In this document: one piece after another, positions 2,446-54,845 of the stretch
Numbering within the stretch: the stretch's first letter is position 1
Layout: the number at the start of each line of letters is the position of its first letter
Assembly (NCBI RefSeq): GCF_000006765.1
Contig: NC_002516.2
Origin: Pseudomonas aeruginosa PAO1
GTDB lineage: Bacteria; Pseudomonadota; Gammaproteobacteria; Pseudomonadales; Pseudomonadaceae
DNA length: 64,000 nt
Strand: one strand, 5' to 3'
The notes under the pieces: generated by a model
What the model saw: the letters and a program-made list of their open reading frames with translations, nothing else
What the model was told of the DNA's origin: nothing
Database searches by the model: none
Position numbers and translations under genes: made by a program

Positions 2446-4649
2446 ATGCCGCCGTCCGCCGGCGTGCCCTGCTCGTCCGGTTCCGCGGATTTCGCCTTGG
2501 GCGCCCGGCTCAACTGTACGTTGAGACGCGGCATGGACAGTTCGAGGCCGGCCTGGTCGAGGCGCCGACGCAGGCGCAGGTTGAACGCCCGCTGGACCTC
2601 CCACTGCTTGATCGGCGCGGTCTTGAAGCGGAAGCGCAGGATCGCCTGGCCGTTGTCGAAACTCTCCACGCCCTGCAATTCCATCGGCGACCACAGGTTG
2701 CGGTAGACCGCCGGGTCGCTGCGCAGCTCCATCGCGACCTCGCGCACCAGCGCCACCGCGTCGTCGATCGGCATGCTCGCCGGCACCGGCCAGCGGAACA
2801 TCGCGTAGCCGAACTGGCGCGAGTAGTTCTTGATGCTCTTGATCTCGCTGAACGGGATGGTATGCACCACGCCGTCCAGGTCGCGCAGGCGCACGGTACG
2901 GATAGTCAGGCCCTCGACCGTGCCAAGGTGGCCGCCGACGTCGACGTAGTCGTCGATCGACAGCGAGTCCTCGATGATGATGAACAGGCCGGTGATCAGG
3001 TCCGCCACCAGCGACTGCGCACCGAAGCCGATGGCCAGGCCGATCACGCCGGCACCGGCCAGCAGCGGGGTGACGTTCATGCCCATGTTGGCCAGGGCGA
3101 CGATCAGGGCGATCACCGCGATGGTGGCGAACAGTACGTTGCGGATCAGCGGCAGCATGGTCAGCGCGCGGGTGTTCGGCCGGCTCTTGCCGCCCAGGCC
3201 GAGGCTGTGCTGGATCGCGGTATCGGTGAGGATCCAGATCAGCCAGGCGACCAGCAGGGTGGTGCCGAAGCTGACTACCTTCATGCTGATCTGCTCGCCC
3301 TCGCCTTCCGCATAGCGAATCAGCGACATGCCCCAGACGCGCAAGGCGACCTCGATGAAGAACAGCACCACGAAGATGTGCAGCAGGGTGTAGCCGAAGC
3401 TTTGCAACTGCTCGATGTACGGCGCGCTGCGGCGCGGGCCGGCGCCGACCCGACTGGAACGGCGGCGGATCAGCCCGATCACGGTCATCGCCACCACCGC
3501 CAGCACCGCGCAGACCAGCGCCCGGCGCAACGCCGAACTGCTGTCGCCGGCGGAAACGAAGGTGGCGAATAGGGAAATCCCCACCAGCACCAGCACCGGC
3601 ACGAACCACAGCGAGCCGACCAGTTGCACCAGGTCGTGCAGGCTACGGCGCTTGAGGCGGCGCTCCAGCGGCTGGTTGCGGATCAGGTGGGCGATCGGCC
3701 GGCGGAAACGCATCACGAACAGCGCGGTGAACAGCGCGGCGCTGGCGTTGGCCAGGGTACTCAGGCAGATCGAGGTGTGCTCGCCGAGGCCGGCGATCAG
3801 CCGCGGATCGTGGGCGACCTCGCCCAGCGCGGCGAGGCTGCCGATCAGCCACAACGGGCGGAACGCCTGGCGCCGCAGGATATCCAGGGCGCGCTGGCGG
3901 TGCGGGCCGCTGAGCAGCGAGAGGGAAATCACGCACAGCGCGGAGAACAGCGTGCCGCAGACCAGCACATAGGCCATGACCATCGCCAGGGTCTTGCTCA
4001 GGGAGTCCGGCAGCACCACCGACAGGTACAGGGTGATGAGGAAGGCCACCAGCCAGGGGCCCAGCTTGCGCAGGGAAAACAGCAGCAGGTCGCGGGTCTT
4101 CGGATGCTGCGGCAACTCCGCCGACAGGCCGAAGCGCTCGCGCATGCGCCGGCTGAGCCAGAGCAGCGCGCTGGCCAGGCAGGCCCAGAGGAGGATCACC
4201 ACCGAAAAATCGAAGACCATCGCCGGCAGGTCGCGCCAGCTGGGAAAGCGCTCCTCGAGTTCGGCACGCGCCAGCTGGAACTGGTTGCCCCATAACGCGA
4301 CCGGGCTGTTCGCGCCCTGGAACTGCTTTTCCAGGCTGGTCAGGGTATCGCCGATCAGCCCCAGCACCCCACCCTCGCTTTCCTTGCCTTTCTTGGTCAC
4401 GTCCCGCAGCTGTTTCAGCTTTTTCAGCAGGTCGGCGCGCTGCCTGTCGTTCTCCAGGGTCTGGATGACCTGGTTCAGCGATTGTTCCAACTGCGCATCG
4501 CTGACCTTCTCGCCACCGGAGGAACTCCCCGCCAACGGGTTCGGCAGCGCCGCGGCGCCCGGCGGCGAGTAGAACAGGGCGGCGCAGAGGCACAGCAGCA
4601 GGGCCGCCAGGACGCGGGAGCGAAGGGTGAAGCGGGCGATGATCGGCAC
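2442..4649 (-). CDS. large MscS-family mechanosensitive channel (YbiO-like); start uncertain (GTG 4649 or ATG 4691/4694)
   Basis: Many TM segments then the MscS core LAGAGVIGLAIGFGAQSLVADLITGLFII...GTVEGLTIRTVRLRDLDG. Confidence 0.9.
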   Translation of the reverse strand: MPIIARFTLRSRVLAALLLCLCAALFYSPPGAAALPNPLAGSSSGGEKVSDAQLEQSLNQVIQTLENDRQRADLLKKLKQLRDVTKKGKESEGGVLGLIGDTLTSLEKQFQGANSPVALWGNQFQLARAELEERFPSWRDLPAMVFDFSVVILLWACLASALLWLSRRMRERFGLSAELPQHPKTRDLLLFSLRKLGPWLVAFLITLYLSVVLPDSLSKTLAMVMAYVLVCGTLFSALCVISLSLLSGPHRQRALDILRRQAFRPLWLIGSLAALGEVAHDPRLIAGLGEHTSICLSTLANASAALFTALFVMRFRRPIAHLIRNQPLERRLKRRSLHDLVQLVGSLWFVPVLVLVGISLFATFVSAGDSSSALRRALVCAVLAVVAMTVIGLIRRRSSRVGAGPRRSAPYIEQLQSFGYTLLHIFVVLFFIEVALRVWGMSLIRYAEGEGEQISMKVVSFGTTLLVAWLIWILTDTAIQHSLGLGGKSRPNTRALTMLPLIRNVLFATIAVIALIVALANMGMNVTPLLAGAGVIGLAIGFGAQSLVADLITGLFIIIEDSLSIDDYVDVGGHLGTVEGLTIRTVRLRDLDGVVHTIPFSEIKSIKNYSRQFGYAMFRWPVPASMPIDDAVALVREVAMELRSDPAVYRNLWSPMELQGVESFDNGQAILRFRFKTAPIKQWEVQRAFNLRLRRRLDQAGLELSMPRLNVQLSRAPKAKSAEPDEQGTPADGGI

Positions 4650-8896: not shown

Positions 8897-9140
8897 CCCA
8901 GCCTCGGCAGGGCGCCCGCCCGGAACCACCGGTCAAATCGTAGCGTAGGGCGAATAACCGCATCGCGGTTATCCGCCGATTGTGCAGGGCCGCGGCGGAT
9001 AACGCCTATGGCGTTATTCGCCCTACCGTCCGCAGCACAGCCCCAGCCTCGGCAGGGCGCCCGCCCGGCACCACCGGTCAAACCATGGCGTAGGGCGAAT
9101 AACCGCATCGCGGTTATCCGCCGGCTGTGCAGGGCAGCGG
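8897..9140. repeat. cluster of three GTAG-family REP elements within a ~144-bp tandem duplication (BIME-like)
   Basis: GTAGGGCGAATAACCGCATCGCGGTTATCCGCCG at 8945-8978 and 9090-9123; inverted variant at 8993-9026; flank CCCCAGCCTCGGCAGGGCGCCCGCCCGG repeated at 8897 and 9041. Confidence 0.88.
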
Positions 9141-9235
9141 CCCTTGCCCGGATTTTGGGCAGCGTGCACCAGCAGGCGACAAATCGGCATCAATCGCTGG
9201 CGGAAAAGCCCGCTCCGTCATTTTTCCGCAATCGA

Positions 9236-9395: not shown

Positions 9396-9630
9396 TAACG
9401 AAGATTTCGGGGGCCTCGGTACAGGCAGGCTGGGGAATCCCCTCTTTTACACCCGGCGGCAGACGCAGCATCCGCGCGCAACCGCCACACCCGTTTCGGG
9501 GACCTCGGTACAGGCAGGCTGAGAACTCCCCTCTTTTATGCCCGGCGGTAGCGCAGCGATCCGCGCCTCCGCCCTCCCGTTTGGGGACCTCGGTACAGGC
9601 AGGCTGAGAATTCCCCCTTTTATTCCCGGC
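9396..9630 (+). ncRNA. nrsZ: nitrogen-regulated sRNA NrsZ (three stem-loop repeats); ends approximate
   Basis: Located between ntrC and PA5126 behind a sigma54 promoter; three repeats starting at 9405, 9494 and 9580, each folding GGGGA..CTCGG-[TACAGGCAGG]-CTGAG..TCCCC; matches the recalled description of NrsZ. Confidence 0.82.
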
Positions 9631-10087
9631 CGTCGCGCTCCTGCAGTTCGACGACGAGGCGCCAGCCCTCGCCATCCTCCGACCACTGCCAGCGCCCCTG
9701 CAAGGGGTGGGTCGAGACCAGGCTCAACAGCAGCGCCTTTCCCTCCTCGCGGAGGCGCCAGCGCAACGGCTGGCCCAGCCATCGCCCGTCTCCCTGCTGC
9801 GCCGCGCCCCGGGCGACGATGCGCAACGTCAGGGCACCCTCCACCCGTGCCGCCGTAACCGCAGCCTGGCGATCGAAGCGCAGGACCAGGCCCTGCTCGC
9901 TCTCCCCGACCGCCAGCAGTTGCGGCGCAGACGTCGGCAGCGAAGCGGGACCGAACAACCTGCCGAGCATCAGCCCGAACAACAACCCGGCAAGCACCAG
10001 CGCACCCCAGACTTTCCAGCGCTGGCGCCGCAGATCGTCGATGGCGGAGGTAGAATGCCGCCCGTTATCTGCTCCGGAGCCCTGCAT
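9620..10087 (-). CDS. membrane-anchored hypothetical protein (PA5126-like)
   Basis: 155 aa from ATG 10087; single TM segment WGALVLAGLLFGLMLG; stop codon overlaps the third nrsZ repeat. Confidence 0.75.
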   Translation of the reverse strand: MQGSGADNGRHSTSAIDDLRRQRWKVWGALVLAGLLFGLMLGRLFGPASLPTSAPQLLAVGESEQGLVLRFDRQAAVTAARVEGALTLRIVARGAAQQGDGRWLGQPLRWRLREEGKALLLSLVSTHPLQGRWQWSEDGEGWRLVVELQERDGRE

Positions 10088-13703: not shown

Positions 13704-13782
13704 GCAGGGCGGATAACCGCGTCGCGGTTATCCGCCGCTTCTGCAGGCCATCGACGGATAACGCCTGCGACGTTATCCGCCG
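13704..13782. repeat. pair of degenerate REP elements
   Basis: GCAGGGCGGATAACCGCGTCGCGGTTATCCGCCG (13704-13737) and CGGATAACG..CGTTATCCGCCG (13755-13782); same family as 8945-9123. Confidence 0.8.
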
Positions 13783-47726: not shown

Positions 47727-49565
47727 ATGCCCCGGATACTCGCAGCCACGGCAGGTTCGTTCGTCTTGAAAGCCTATTTCCATCGCTGGCGCTCGCTGGT
47801 CATCCTCGCCCTGCTTCTCGCGCCGCTGCTCTGGCCCCTGCAATATTTCGCCGAGCGCTACTACAGCGAGCAGTTGGCCGAGCAGAACCGCCAGACGCTC
47901 GACCTCTACGTCGCCAACCTGCTCGGCACGCTGCGCCGCTACGAAGAACTGCCGCAGATCCTCGGCGGCCTGCCGGTGCTGCGCCAGGCCCTGCAACAAC
48001 CTGGCGACCCGCTGCTGCAGAAGATCGCCAACGAGGCGCTGGCCGACATCCGCCGACGCACCGGCGCCGACGTGATCTACCTGCTGCAACCGGACGGCAC
48101 CACCCAGGTCGCCTCCAACTGGGCCCAGGCGGACAGTTTCGTCCACCGCAACTTCGCCTTCCGCCCCTATTATCGCGAGGCCATGCAGGGCCGCCTGGCG
48201 CGCTTCTTCGGCCTGGGCACCACCTCGATCAAGCGCGGCTACTACTTCGCCAGCGCGGTGAAGGAAGGCTCGCGGATCATCGGCGTGCTGGTGGTGAAGG
48301 TCGATCTCGAACACATCGAACGGCTCTGGGGCAATTCCCCGGAGCAACTGCTGGTGATAGACAACTACGGCGTGGTGATCCTCTCCTCCCGCGAGGATTG
48401 GCGCTTCCATGCCAGTCGGCCGCTGAGCGCGGCGGAGCGCGACGAGATCCACGCCAACATCCCCTACCCGGTGCAGGACCCGAAGCCCCTGCGCCTGCAG
48501 CAGAGCGCCTGGCTCAGCCAGAGCCGGACGCTACCGGAAACCGGCTGGACGGTGAGCATCTACGCCCCCCGCACCCTCATCGAACGGCCGGTGCGCAGCG
48601 TCCTGCTGATCGGCGGCGCGACCCTGCTCGCCCTGCTCCTGCTGCTTACCCTGCTGACCCTCAGCCGCCGTCACTACCTGGACCGCATCGCTCTCGAGGC
48701 CGAGGCCAAGCGCCAGTTGGAAGAGCGCGTACTGGAACGCACCCGCGAGCTGGAGAACGCCAACGCGCAGTTGCAGCAGGAAGTCCACGAACGCGAGCAG
48801 GCCCAGCGCGAGCTGATGCGCGCCCAGGACGAAGTGGTCCAGGCCGGCAAGCTCACGGCCCTCGGCACCATGTCGGCGAGCATCAGCCACGAACTCAACC
48901 AGCCGCTGGCGGCGATCCGCAGCTACGCCGACAACGCCCGGGTGCTGCTCGACCACCAGCGCACCGAGGACGCCCGCGGCAATCTCGAGCAGATCAGCGA
49001 CCTCACCACCCGCATGGCCTCGATCATCGCCCACCTCAAGGCCTATGCCCGCGGTGCGCGCCGGGCGCCGGAGAACGTGCAGTTGCAGCCGGCGATCGAG
49101 GACGCCCTGTCGATGGTGGCCAGCCGGCGGCGGGCGATGAACGTCGAACTGCTGCGCGACGTGCCGGACGCCCCGCTGTGGGTCCAGGCCGGCGAGACCC
49201 GCTTGCGGCAGATCCTCGGCAACCTGCTCACCAATGCCCTCGACGCGCTCGCCGAGAAAGCTCCGCCGCGGCGCCTGTGGGTAATCGCCAGCCAGGACCA
49301 GCACGGCGTGACCCTGACTCTGCGCGACAACGGCCCGGGGTTTTCCGAGGACGCCCTGGCCCACGCCCACGAACCCTTCTTCACCACCAAGACCACCGCC
49401 AAAGGGCTCGGCCTCGGCCTGGCCATCTGCGATAACCTATTGCGCGCCCTCGGCGGCCGCCTGGAAATGGGCAACCATCTCGAAGGCGGCGCCGTGGTGC
49501 GCCTGCACTTGCTGCCGGGAGTTCCCGGCGTCGCCGCCATGCCCCAGGAGGAAACCCGCGCATGA
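47727..49565 (+). CDS. dctB: C4-dicarboxylate sensor histidine kinase
   Basis: Periplasmic Cache domain (NFAFRPYY, RGYYF), SISHELNQPL, GLGLGLAI. Confidence 0.95.
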   Translation: MPRILAATAGSFVLKAYFHRWRSLVILALLLAPLLWPLQYFAERYYSEQLAEQNRQTLDLYVANLLGTLRRYEELPQILGGLPVLRQALQQPGDPLLQKIANEALADIRRRTGADVIYLLQPDGTTQVASNWAQADSFVHRNFAFRPYYREAMQGRLARFFGLGTTSIKRGYYFASAVKEGSRIIGVLVVKVDLEHIERLWGNSPEQLLVIDNYGVVILSSREDWRFHASRPLSAAERDEIHANIPYPVQDPKPLRLQQSAWLSQSRTLPETGWTVSIYAPRTLIERPVRSVLLIGGATLLALLLLLTLLTLSRRHYLDRIALEAEAKRQLEERVLERTRELENANAQLQQEVHEREQAQRELMRAQDEVVQAGKLTALGTMSASISHELNQPLAAIRSYADNARVLLDHQRTEDARGNLEQISDLTTRMASIIAHLKAYARGARRAPENVQLQPAIEDALSMVASRRRAMNVELLRDVPDAPLWVQAGETRLRQILGNLLTNALDALAEKAPPRRLWVIASQDQHGVTLTLRDNGPGFSEDALAHAHEPFFTTKTTAKGLGLGLAICDNLLRALGGRLEMGNHLEGGAVVRLHLLPGVPGVAAMPQEETRA

Positions 49566-50919: not shown

Positions 50920-52186
<1,267 letters not shown>

Positions 52187-52201: not shown

Positions 52202-52834
52202 ATGCACGCGCTCGCGCGCGTCTGGGCGCGCCTGGAGGAAGGCCTGATCGCCTTCCTCCTCGCCGCCATGACGCTGGTTACCTTCGTTTATGTAGTCCTC
52301 AATAACCTCTATACGCTGCTCTACGATCTCGCCGATCTCTGGGAGGGCGGCAACGAGACGCTGCTCGCCATCGGCGATGGGGTCCTCACCCTGGCCCAGG
52401 AGATGACCTGGAGCAACGCCCTGACCAAGGCCCTGTTCGCCTGGCTGATCTTCCTCGGCATCGCCTACGGCGTACGCACCGCCGGGCACCTCGGCGTGGA
52501 CGTGCTGGTGAAGCTGGCCTCGCGACCGGTACAGCGCGTGCTCGGCGTGATCGCCTGCCTGGCCTGCCTCGGCTACGCCGGCCTGCTCTGCGTGGCCAGC
52601 TATGACTGGGTGAAGACCCTGTTCATCGCCGGCATCGGCGCCGAGGACCTCGACCACTTCGGCATCCGCCAATGGCACATCGGCCTGATCGTGCCGGTCG
52701 GCTTCGCCCTGGTGTTCATCCGTTTCGCCGAGATCCTCGTGCGCATCCTGCGCAACCGCCAGACCGGACTGGGACTGGCCGACGAGGCTGCCGACGCGCT
52801 GAAGCTGACCGAGCACGAGGAGCCCAAGGCATGA
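52202..52834 (+). CDS. dctQ: TRAP small permease
   Basis: Four TM segments, YGVRTAGHLGVD. Confidence 0.94.
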   Translation: MHALARVWARLEEGLIAFLLAAMTLVTFVYVVLNNLYTLLYDLADLWEGGNETLLAIGDGVLTLAQEMTWSNALTKALFAWLIFLGIAYGVRTAGHLGVDVLVKLASRPVQRVLGVIACLACLGYAGLLCVASYDWVKTLFIAGIGAEDLDHFGIRQWHIGLIVPVGFALVFIRFAEILVRILRNRQTGLGLADEAADALKLTEHEEPKA

Positions 52835-54114
52835 CCATTCTGTTCCTCTTCCTGCTGCTCTTCCTGCTGATGTTCATCGGCGTGCCGATCGCCGTCTCCC
52901 TGGGTCTCTCCGGCGCACTGACGATCCTCCTGTTCAGCCCGGACTCGGTACGCTCGCTGGCGATCAAGCTGTTCGAGACCTCCGAGCACTACACCCTGCT
53001 GGCGATCCCGTTCTTCCTGCTCTCCGGCGCGTTCATGACCACCGGTGGCGTGGCGCGGCGCCTGATCGACTTCGCCAACGCCTGCGTCGGACACATCCGT
53101 GGCGGCCTGGCGATCGCCGCGGTGCTCGCCTGCATGCTCTTCGCCGCGCTATCCGGCTCGTCTCCGGCAACGGTGGCGGCAGTGGGTTCGATCGCCATCG
53201 CCGGCATGGTCCGCTCGGGTTATCCACAGGCGTTCGGCGCCGGGATCGTCTGCAACGCCGGCACCCTCGGCATCCTCATCCCGCCATCGATCGTGATGGT
53301 GGTCTACGCCGCCGCCACCGAGACCTCGGTGGGCAAGCTGTTCATCGCCGGCGTGGTTCCGGGGCTGCTGCTGGGACTGATCCTGATGGTGGTGATCTAC
53401 ATCGTCGCCCGGGTCAAGAAGCTGCCCGCCATGCCAAGGGTCAGTCTGCGCGAATGGCTGGCCAGCGCGCGCAAGGCGCTGTGGGGGCTGCTGCTGATGG
53501 TGATCATCCTCGGCGGCATCTATTCCGGCGCCTTCACCCCCACCGAGGCCGCCGCCGTCGCCGCGGTGTACTCGGCCTTCGTCGCACTGTTCGTCTACCG
53601 CGACATGCGCCTGAGCGAATGCCCGAAGGTGCTGCTGGAGTCCGGCAAGCTGACCATCATGCTGATGTTCATCATCGCCAACGCCATGCTCTTCGCCCAC
53701 GTGCTGACCACCGAGCAGATACCGCAGAGCATCGCCAGTTGGGTCACGGAACTGGGACTTTCGCCATGGATGTTCCTGCTGGTGGTGAACATCGTGCTGC
53801 TGATCGCCGGCAACTTCATGGAGCCTTCGGCGATCATCCTGATCCTGGCGCCGATCTTCTTCCCCATCGCCATGGAGCTGGGCATCGATCCGATCCACCT
53901 CGGCATCATCATGGTGGTGAACATGGAGATCGGCCTGATCACGCCGCCGGTCGGGCTCAACCTGTTCGTCACCTCGGCGGTCACCGGCATGCCGCTGGGC
54001 GCGACCATCCGCGCAGCGCTGCCGTGGCTCATGATCCTGCTGGTGTTCCTGATCATCGTGACCTACATCCCGGCGGTATCCCTGGCATTGCCGAACTGGC
54101 TGGGGATGAGCTGA
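52831..54114 (+). CDS. dctM: TRAP large permease
   Basis: LAIPFFLLSG, GTLGILIPPSI, LITPPVGLNL. Confidence 0.96.
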   Translation: MTILFLFLLLFLLMFIGVPIAVSLGLSGALTILLFSPDSVRSLAIKLFETSEHYTLLAIPFFLLSGAFMTTGGVARRLIDFANACVGHIRGGLAIAAVLACMLFAALSGSSPATVAAVGSIAIAGMVRSGYPQAFGAGIVCNAGTLGILIPPSIVMVVYAAATETSVGKLFIAGVVPGLLLGLILMVVIYIVARVKKLPAMPRVSLREWLASARKALWGLLLMVIILGGIYSGAFTPTEAAAVAAVYSAFVALFVYRDMRLSECPKVLLESGKLTIMLMFIIANAMLFAHVLTTEQIPQSIASWVTELGLSPWMFLLVVNIVLLIAGNFMEPSAIILILAPIFFPIAMELGIDPIHLGIIMVVNMEIGLITPPVGLNLFVTSAVTGMPLGATIRAALPWLMILLVFLIIVTYIPAVSLALPNWLGMS

Positions 54115-54128
54115 CGGAACGGTAACGA

Positions 54129-54244
54129 CGGCGGAAAACCCCGCCCTGCGCTCGGGCCTTCGGCAAAAATCCGCTCATGCCGCAGGCCCGTGCCCCGCAG
54201 TTGACGGGCCGGGCCACCTGTCGATGGCTGGCACGCCGCTTGCT
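54129..54244 (+). promoter_or_regulatory. second sigma54 promoter with DctD-like upstream sites, downstream of dctM
   Basis: TGGCACGCCGCTTGCT (54229-54244); upstream CGGCGGAAAACCCCGC (54129) and CGGCAAAAATCCGCTC (54161). Confidence 0.7.
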
Positions 54245-54254
54245 CAATCGCTCG

Positions 54255-54455
54255 CAGTGCCCCTGGCACCGGCTTTCGGTTCGCCCAGCGAACCGCGCCC
54301 TTCGGCCACGAACCGGATGGCGGCCCCTTCCCCTGTGCCGACGTGCGCCAGCACGCGCGGCGGGTGGGCGGCGATCCCGTCCCCCCAGCGGTCTTCACAC
54401 CCTGAAGCCCAAATGAAGAGCCCGGCGAACGCCGGGCTTCTTCATTTCTTTCCTT
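54255..54455 (+). ncRNA. candidate sigma54-dependent sRNA (predicted only)
   Basis: Lies between the sigma54 promoter and a strong hairpin; internal hairpin CGGTTCGC-CCA-GCGAACCG; no RBS-preceded ORF seen. Confidence 0.4.
54411..54455 (+). terminator. strong hairpin terminator in the dctM-arcD intergenic region
   Basis: AAATGAAGAGCCCGGC-GAAC-GCCGGGCTTCTTCATTT followed by CTTTCCTT. Confidence 0.8.
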
Positions 54456-54627
54456 GTGCTTTTTCGTTCTTTGATAAGAGCGGAAAATTATTTTTACTTA
54501 TAAATAAAAAATACTCCTCTCGAAATACTGCAACACTTCCCTGGAAAGTCGCGGCGGTTTTTCGACGGACCGTCAACAAGCCGGCGACCACCCACCTGAA
54601 AGTCAGAATACCGTCTCGCGAAATTCA

Positions 54628-54785: not shown

Positions 54786-54845
54786 GCGACTTACAGGAAT
54801 GCGTCATCTAATTACTTTGAGTAGGAAGCTATTGACGTGGATCAG
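54786..54845 (+). promoter_or_regulatory. arcDABC promoter: ANR box plus upstream ArgR/NarL region
   Basis: TTGAC-GTGG-ATCAG at 54832-54845 (the described arcD ANR box); the upstream ArgR/NarL assignment is from literature recall. Confidence 0.8.

Follow-up and report, generated by a model that had tools for sequence, protein, structure and literature searches.

A candidate sigma-54 promoter and a predicted non-coding RNA in the 3′UTR of the dctPQM operon of Pseudomonas aeruginosa

What does a perfect sigma-54 promoter do behind the last gene of an operon? The question is raised by the 795 bp spacer between dctM and arcD of Pseudomonas aeruginosa, which was analyzed here as part of a window of 64 kb (the whole stretch of DNA under study, 64,000 positions). 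In order along the window lie glnA (484-1893, glutamine synthetase), the small RNA gene NrsZ (9397-9632, Rfam family RF02695), dctD (3′ end at 50950), dctP (51191-52186), dctQ (52202-52834), dctM (52831-54114, + strand), arcD (from 54910) and arcA, and dctBD and dctPQM are adjacent to each other. The last gene of dctPQM, dctM, encodes a TRAP large permease of 427 aa; exactly this protein is present in thousands of P. aeruginosa assemblies and in more than 11,000 blocks of a collection of 15 billion proteins. The candidate element occupies the first 340 bp of the spacer. A preliminary description of the locus had proposed that a duplicated DctD/sigma-54 promoter drives a dicarboxylate-induced small RNA from it, with a relic promoter of a lost gene as the alternative. 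Here we analyzed the promoter, its activator sites, the predicted transcript and the distribution of the segment, and we weighed the explanations which these data allow.

The sigma-54 element, TGGCACGCCGCTTGCT at 54229-54244 on the + strand, carries the -24 GG and the -12 GC and matches TGGCAC-N5-TTGCW at 16 of 16 positions with exact spacing. It begins 115 bp past the final base (54114) of the dctM stop codon, just as had been described. Only three perfect matches to this consensus were found in the window against 0.06 expected from dinucleotide shuffles, and the remaining two are located upstream of glnA and of dctP. Both of these are classical sigma-54 genes, so the perfect match behind dctM strongly predicts a real sigma-54 site. 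The element is identical in 22 of 22 sequences of the P. aeruginosa complex, and from its geometry the predicted +1 falls at 54254-54256. In the PAO1-like record CP047067.1 it occupies approximately 5,820,242-5,820,257.

Two DctD-like sites stand upstream of this element, as the preliminary description had stated. The distal site CGGCGGAAAACCCCGC (54129-54144, unstranded) agrees with TGGCGGAAATCCGCCA at 11 of 16 positions, and the proximal site CGGCAAAAATCCGCTC (54161-54176, unstranded) agrees at 12 of 16 with the real dctP site 1, TGGCGAAAATCCGCCA, and at 11 of 16 with the consensus. The idealised consensus used for this comparison is genuine, since TGGCGGAAATCCGCCA is found verbatim in dctP promoters of other species, where the spacing is 32-33 bp. 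The DctD site model was rebuilt from the dctP promoters of 16 related loci; tandem 16-bp palindromes of this type, 32-33 bp apart, were recognised in 13 of the 16, at a distance from the promoter that varies. The geometry of the candidate does copy that of dctP: its boxes start 32 bp from each other, with 54 bp from the second box to the GG, the values for the dctP enhancer being 32 bp and 53 bp both in the window and in the related locus L001. Counted from the GG, the two boxes (each 11/16) stand 54 and 86 bp upstream, the usual enhancer range being about 70-200 bp. Pairs in which both sites reach at least 11/16 at 31-33 bp apart occur three times in the 64 kb, namely as the dctP enhancer, as the candidate pair and once within dctB. 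The chance of such a phased pair at no more than 190 bp from a given promoter is roughly 0.6%, and the best pair score of the candidate is 11 against 7-9 for the control promoters of glnA, L021 and L024, the last two being dctP-like promoters without DctD sites. The pair inside dctB is a weak one (48874-48922, 11/16 and 12/16, 33 bp apart) and lies upstream of dctD.

Judged singly, the candidate sites are weak. With a weight matrix made from real sites their scores are negative, and among the 64,000 positions they come no higher than 203rd (box at 54129) and 116th (box at 54161). The half-site cores read GGCG...CCCG in site 1 and GGCA...CGCT in site 2; in each site at least one half-site has lost a core base that is otherwise invariant. 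Neither keeps the intact GGCG...CGCC core, and the best candidate site, by consensus, has 11/16 against 13-16/16 in the recognisable dctP pairs; at least one site of 13/16 or better is present in each of the 13 relatives' dctP promoters that have a recognisable DctD pair. The candidate enhancer is weaker than all 13 of these pairs when scored alike. The GGCA..CGCT core of box 2 is also seen in the proximal dctP enhancer site of L041 (Pseudomonas sp. GD03944), CGGCAGCTTTCCGCTC. A search near the promoter for the consensus of NtrC, CbrB, FleQ and IHF gave none, and no full AauR consensus was found either. As the sites are more degenerate than the dctP pairs of relatives, the dependence of the candidate promoter on DctD is plausible only, and another activator, or no activation at all, may apply. 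Box 1 also overlaps a perfect GGCGG-N6-CCGCC inverted repeat (54130-54145, 16 nt past the dctM stop), which as RNA would give a small hairpin without a U-tract in the dctPQM 3′UTR.

The word "duplicated" in the earlier proposal stands for the motifs, which are shared, but not for descent. Segmental duplication of the dctP promoter was ruled out, because in both global and local alignment the two promoter regions are alike only over the 19-bp promoter core. With no similarity beyond the motifs, the element behind dctM is a second promoter of the same design and not a duplicate by descent.

The RNA predicted from this promoter runs from 54255 to 54450 on the + strand (approximately 191-201 nt), the start being taken from the promoter geometry and the 3′ end from the terminator. 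The region has a GC content of 68-75%, which is above that of the flanking genes, and it contains C-rich stretches. A 5′ hairpin, GUGCC-CCU-GGCAC (54257-54269, + strand, 5 bp), is located at +3, and it is followed by the hairpin that had already been noticed at 54277-54295 (+ strand), CGGUUCGC-CCA-GCGAACCG, which has 8 bp and a 3-nt loop whose A is replaced by G in the divergent clade. The intrinsic terminator at 54411-54455 (+ strand) is as strong as had been claimed: an extended stem of 15 bp (54411-54447) encloses a GC core of 7 bp (54420-54437) and a T-rich tract continues to 54455, with a folding energy of -27.1 kcal/mol, z = -5.7 and the tail TTCTTCATTTCTTTCCTT, in which the T-tract is broken by C residues. 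Compared with shuffled sequences, the full-length RNA folds with z = -4.7, the body minus the terminator with -1.6 and the reverse complement of the body with -0.5. The excess folding of the RNA thus stems from the terminator, and the body folds no better than shuffles. In Rfam, searched to E 10, no match reached the gathering threshold, and the best sub-threshold hits (E 0.12 or worse) covered the terminator only. Base-pairing targets were sought by RNAduplex in the initiation regions of dctD, dctP, dctQ, dctM, arcD and arcA, and all the duplexes were at or below background.

No terminator was found on the + strand between 54115 and 54410, and the first one after dctM is that at 54411-54455; the dctPQM mRNA must therefore run through the candidate element, and the sequence of the predicted RNA is that of the distal dctPQM 3′UTR. 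The arrangement is that of a 3′UTR-type small RNA gene, with a promoter 115 bp beyond the dctM stop and a terminator in common with the upstream mRNA.

Within the P. aeruginosa complex the segment was traced through 22 sequences: 13 loci from genomes or metagenomes that DctM had located, 8 metagenome contigs and the window. They include a PA7-like lineage that is about 3% diverged across the locus. The segment of approximately 300 bp is nearly invariant among them. Outside the complex, no homologue was found behind dctM by blastn and six-frame tblastn in 80 loci of other species (DctM identity of 86% or less, a set without named sister species), and none of these 80 loci has a sigma-54 promoter after dctM. 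In five of the related loci (L001, L004, L006, L011 and L015) a terminator of the form GCCCGGC-N-GCCGGGC-T(n), closely resembling the core of the terminator in the window, stands within 25-45 nt after dctM. On the simplest reading, the P. aeruginosa lineage would have gained about 300 bp between dctM and the terminator that follows it; stems of the GCCCGGC..GCCGGGC type are common, so the terminators may be homologous but need not be. A repeat or mobile origin of the segment was rejected for lack of a second copy within the window and of any match in the plasmid and phage collections.

Within the predicted RNA, the 22 sequences differ by four substitutions, which lie in its body, and one indel. 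In the predicted fold, three of the four substitutions affect unpaired nucleotides, and the fourth makes a G-U pair out of G-C; the terminator stem loses its bulge in the divergent clade through a 1-nt insertion. Such a pattern would suit a structured RNA (rough chance about 0.03), with far too few changes to speak of covariation, and no homologue was found outside the species complex that could add to them. Divergence from the PA7-like lineage is about 1.3% in the candidate, no lower than in the neighbouring arcD, so the signal of constraint is weak; this divergence was dropped as a measure of constraint because it does not discriminate.

Some further features of the locus were recorded during the comparison. 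The stretch 54511-54598 (approximately 90-100 bp, beyond the terminator and a tract rich in A and T) differs by about 25% from the PA7-like lineage (L082, L083 and L096), and its flanks are 98-99% identical. The middle of dctM (53100-53800) has 10-12 differences per 100 bp from L082 against 1-3 elsewhere in the locus, which suggests a recombined segment. In L081 (positions 3001-4374, GCA_053321535.1, P. aeruginosa) DctM is called as 457 aa with 93% identity; 133 differences separate this locus from the window, hardly any of them in the dctM-arcD spacer. The match of the metagenome contig L099 (OKQI01001545.1, 1.66 kb) to the window breaks off in the loop of the terminator hairpin (54430), and from about position 1076 the contig continues as unrelated coding-like DNA which is absent from the window, due either to an assembly chimera at the hairpin or to a rearrangement.

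In the papers searched, which deal with the transcriptome, sigma-factor ChIP-seq, DAP-seq, transcription factor ChIP-seq, RIL-seq, Hfq RIP-seq, RNA processing and small RNA profiling, no RNA, no start site and no peak of DctD or RpoN was found for the interval from PA5169 to PA5170. The supplements covered, on the PA14 transcriptome, sigma-factor ChIP-seq, RNA processing, the transcription factor network and Hfq RIP-seq, gave none either. The regulon table of the sigma-factor study has dctP under RpoN and arcD only under RpoS/SigX; the table lists genes only and is thus weak negative evidence. In the co-target table of a ChIP-seq-based transcription factor network study (Huang et al. 2019) arcD is given under FleQ, which is a sigma-54 activator, and under PchR. 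A search of the dctM-arcD spacer for a FleQ consensus box gave none. The activators of the DctD family in P. aeruginosa are three, DctD, MifR and AauR (PMC7962211). A 2021 review of the RNA regulators of P. aeruginosa ties RpoN only to NrsZ (nitrogen) and CrcZ (poor carbon sources) (PMC8395346), and lung infection induces the genes of the dct transporter (PMC12645886).

The segment does not code for protein, nor does it look like the remains of a gene. Its GC content by codon phase is flat in every frame (0.72/0.70/0.71), against 0.59/0.43/0.92 in dctM and 0.60/0.40/0.92 in arcD. Open reading frames of 79, 135 and 111 aa and one of 64 aa overlap the region, some of them with GTG or TTG starts, and none has a Pfam match; the two ATG-start frames on the + strand (79 and 135 aa), which were the ones looked up, are absent as exact entries from the collection of 15 billion proteins. 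The annotations of 13 assemblies place no gene between dctM and arcD. The 135-aa frame reads across the terminator, and in the divergent clade the 1-nt insertion throws it out of register. Downstream of 54255 there is no start codon preceded by a ribosome-binding site, which bears out the earlier remark that no convincing reading frame lies behind the predicted start. A coding sequence at this position in relatives was sought by six-frame tblastn in the 80 dctM loci with no result. A relic promoter of a lost gene, or a promoter of an unannotated small protein, is therefore very improbable, even though the overlapping frames and a GC content of 70-75%, which in this genome is more like that of genes than that of the spacers between them, would suit it; the relatives examined have neither a gene nor a sigma-54 promoter after dctM. 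It is hardly to be expected, too, that the element acts in cis, by leaky read-through into arcDABC or by a bound holoenzyme and activator that modulate the formation of the dctPQM 3′ end. The position of arcD, 455 bp downstream on the same strand, and the C residues in the T-tract would allow this, against which stand the strength of the hairpin (-27 kcal/mol, z = -5.7), the absence of arcD from the RpoN genes of the sigma-factor tables, and a promoter region of its own before arcD with an Anr-box-like TTGACGTGGATCAG at 54833, which we take to have a role in arcDABC regulation.

More serious is the explanation that the sigma-54 site is an orphan or nearly silent one, to which the holoenzyme may bind without a productive activator, so that the only RNA is the dctPQM 3′UTR, maybe processed, and the boxes are due to chance or vestigial. 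In E. coli and Salmonella, genome-wide mapping of sigma-54 has given many sites without an obvious regulated transcript, and ChIP has found orphan and intragenic sites there, among them good -24/-12 elements at the 3′ end of a gene with no coding sequence downstream. Activator boxes weaker than any dctP enhancer pair examined, an RNA body which is not significantly structured, the read-through of dctPQM that must cover the region anyway, and a literature in which no published small RNA, start site or RpoN assignment was found would all agree with it. We consider it unlikely on balance, since a perfect consensus is very improbable by chance and is identical in 22 sequences including a lineage about 3% diverged, and since, unlike the E. 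coli and Salmonella sites, this one has two boxes correctly phased and distanced (the chance of roughly 0.6% given above) and points to a terminator at a distance typical of small RNAs. A sigma-54-dependent small RNA that answers another signal through another activator, be it the paralogues MifR or AauR, or FleQ, is a lesser prospect and rather improbable. P. aeruginosa has three regulators of the DctD family, as cited above; the boxes are poor as DctD sites, a TTCGG half-site of the kind found in the AauR consensus (TTCGG-N4-CCGAA) overlaps box 2, and the listing of arcD under FleQ and PchR would place FleQ somewhere near the spacer. However, the full AauR, NtrC, CbrB and FleQ consensus sequences are absent, the 32-bp spacing and the 54-bp distance mirror specifically the dctP enhancer, and the element is linked to dctBD-dctPQM.

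The reading which we tentatively prefer, at somewhat less than an even chance, is a DctD/RpoN-driven, lineage-specific non-coding RNA of about 195 nt, of the 3′UTR type, that has its own promoter and shares the dctPQM terminator; such an RNA is plausible and, in the papers searched, undescribed. According to this reading, 54115-54455 would be a module specific to the P. aeruginosa complex and set between the dctM stop and the dctPQM terminator. An enhancer-binding protein at the sites 54129 and 54161, most likely phosphorylated DctD encoded 3 kb upstream, would activate the sigma-54 promoter at 54229-54244, and transcription would start near 54255 and end at the terminator at 54411-54455. The product would be a GC-rich non-coding RNA of about 195 nt that equals the distal dctPQM 3′UTR, with the architecture of a type-I 3′UTR small RNA. 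As the sites are weak, the promoter would need abundant DctD-P and may fire only when this is available, that is on succinate, fumarate or malate, and the RNA would then act in trans within the C4-dicarboxylate response. Against this reading count the weakness of both DctD-like sites (11/16), the z of -1.6 of the RNA body and the lack of an Rfam family; moreover, read-through of dctPQM under DctD control already makes the same sequence, so a second DctD promoter looks redundant. Of the dicarboxylate-induced DctD/RpoN small RNA proposed beforehand, the promoter, the geometry, the non-coding nature and the terminator have held, whereas the sites are weaker than proposed and the body shows no significant excess folding.

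Short regulatory RNAs driven by an enhancer-binding response regulator together with sigma-54 are known from other bacteria, for example GlmY (GlrR, enterobacteria) and Qrr1-5 (LuxO, Vibrio), which are unrelated to the candidate in sequence, organism and signal. Closer at hand is NrsZ in the same window, which depends on NtrC and RpoN and lies downstream of ntrC in Pseudomonas. It is a small RNA gene directly behind the locus of a two-component enhancer-binding regulator, with a sigma-54 promoter and an intrinsic terminator, an arrangement that the candidate is predicted to repeat. There is no sequence or structure match between the two; unlike NrsZ, the candidate has no internal repeats and lies behind a transporter operon and not behind a regulator gene. 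NrsZ is described as strongly conserved in the Pseudomonads and as being cut into shorter RNAs (PMC8395346), whereas the candidate is confined to the P. aeruginosa complex. In the surroundings of NrsZ, two copies of the P33 small RNA family (Rfam) are recorded just upstream of it (window positions 8916-9220 and 13707-13738), and palindromes of the form GGCG(A/G)ATAACCGC/CGCGGTTATCCGCC recur at 8948-8978, 9093-9123 and 13707-13737. With CrcZ/CrcY, which depend on CbrB/RpoN and sequester Hfq (PMC8395346), the candidate would have in common a sigma-54 promoter, an adjacent two-component activator and the sensing of carbon sources. CrcZ has 407 nt, uses IHF and carries A-rich Hfq-binding motifs; the candidate is rich in C and G, lacks A-rich motifs and shows neither an IHF nor a CbrB site.

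In its architecture the candidate resembles the type-I 3′UTR small RNAs with their own promoter, DapZ and MicL, in which the promoter likewise lies after or inside the upstream gene and the terminator is that of the upstream operon. OppZ and CarZ are presented as autoregulatory small RNAs derived from 3′UTRs (Hoyos et al. 2020, cited in PMC10214189), and a feedback of the candidate on its parent transporter operon is conceivable. For DapZ, MicL, OppZ and CarZ, both Hfq binding and targets are demonstrated, whereas no target or seed was found for the candidate in the neighbouring initiation regions. The candidate would also differ from the 3′UTR small RNAs compared in that both of its routes of synthesis would rest on one regulator.

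Succinate and other C4-dicarboxylates rank first among the carbon sources of P. aeruginosa. Should the promoter prove silent, the locus would offer a well-defined and conserved orphan sigma-54 site. The wider claim, that the dctPQM 3′UTR holds a DctBD/sigma-54 regulatory RNA of the P. aeruginosa lineage, a third RpoN-dependent small RNA besides NrsZ and CrcZ that couples preferred carbon sources to post-transcriptional control, is a doubtful one at present. If it is true, such an RNA may provide feedback on dicarboxylate uptake or cross-talk with catabolite repression, and an RNA induced by preferred carbon sources would fill a missing arm beside the logic of NrsZ and CrcZ. As the relatives are without the segment, it would then also be a recent case of the birth of a small RNA inside a 3′UTR.
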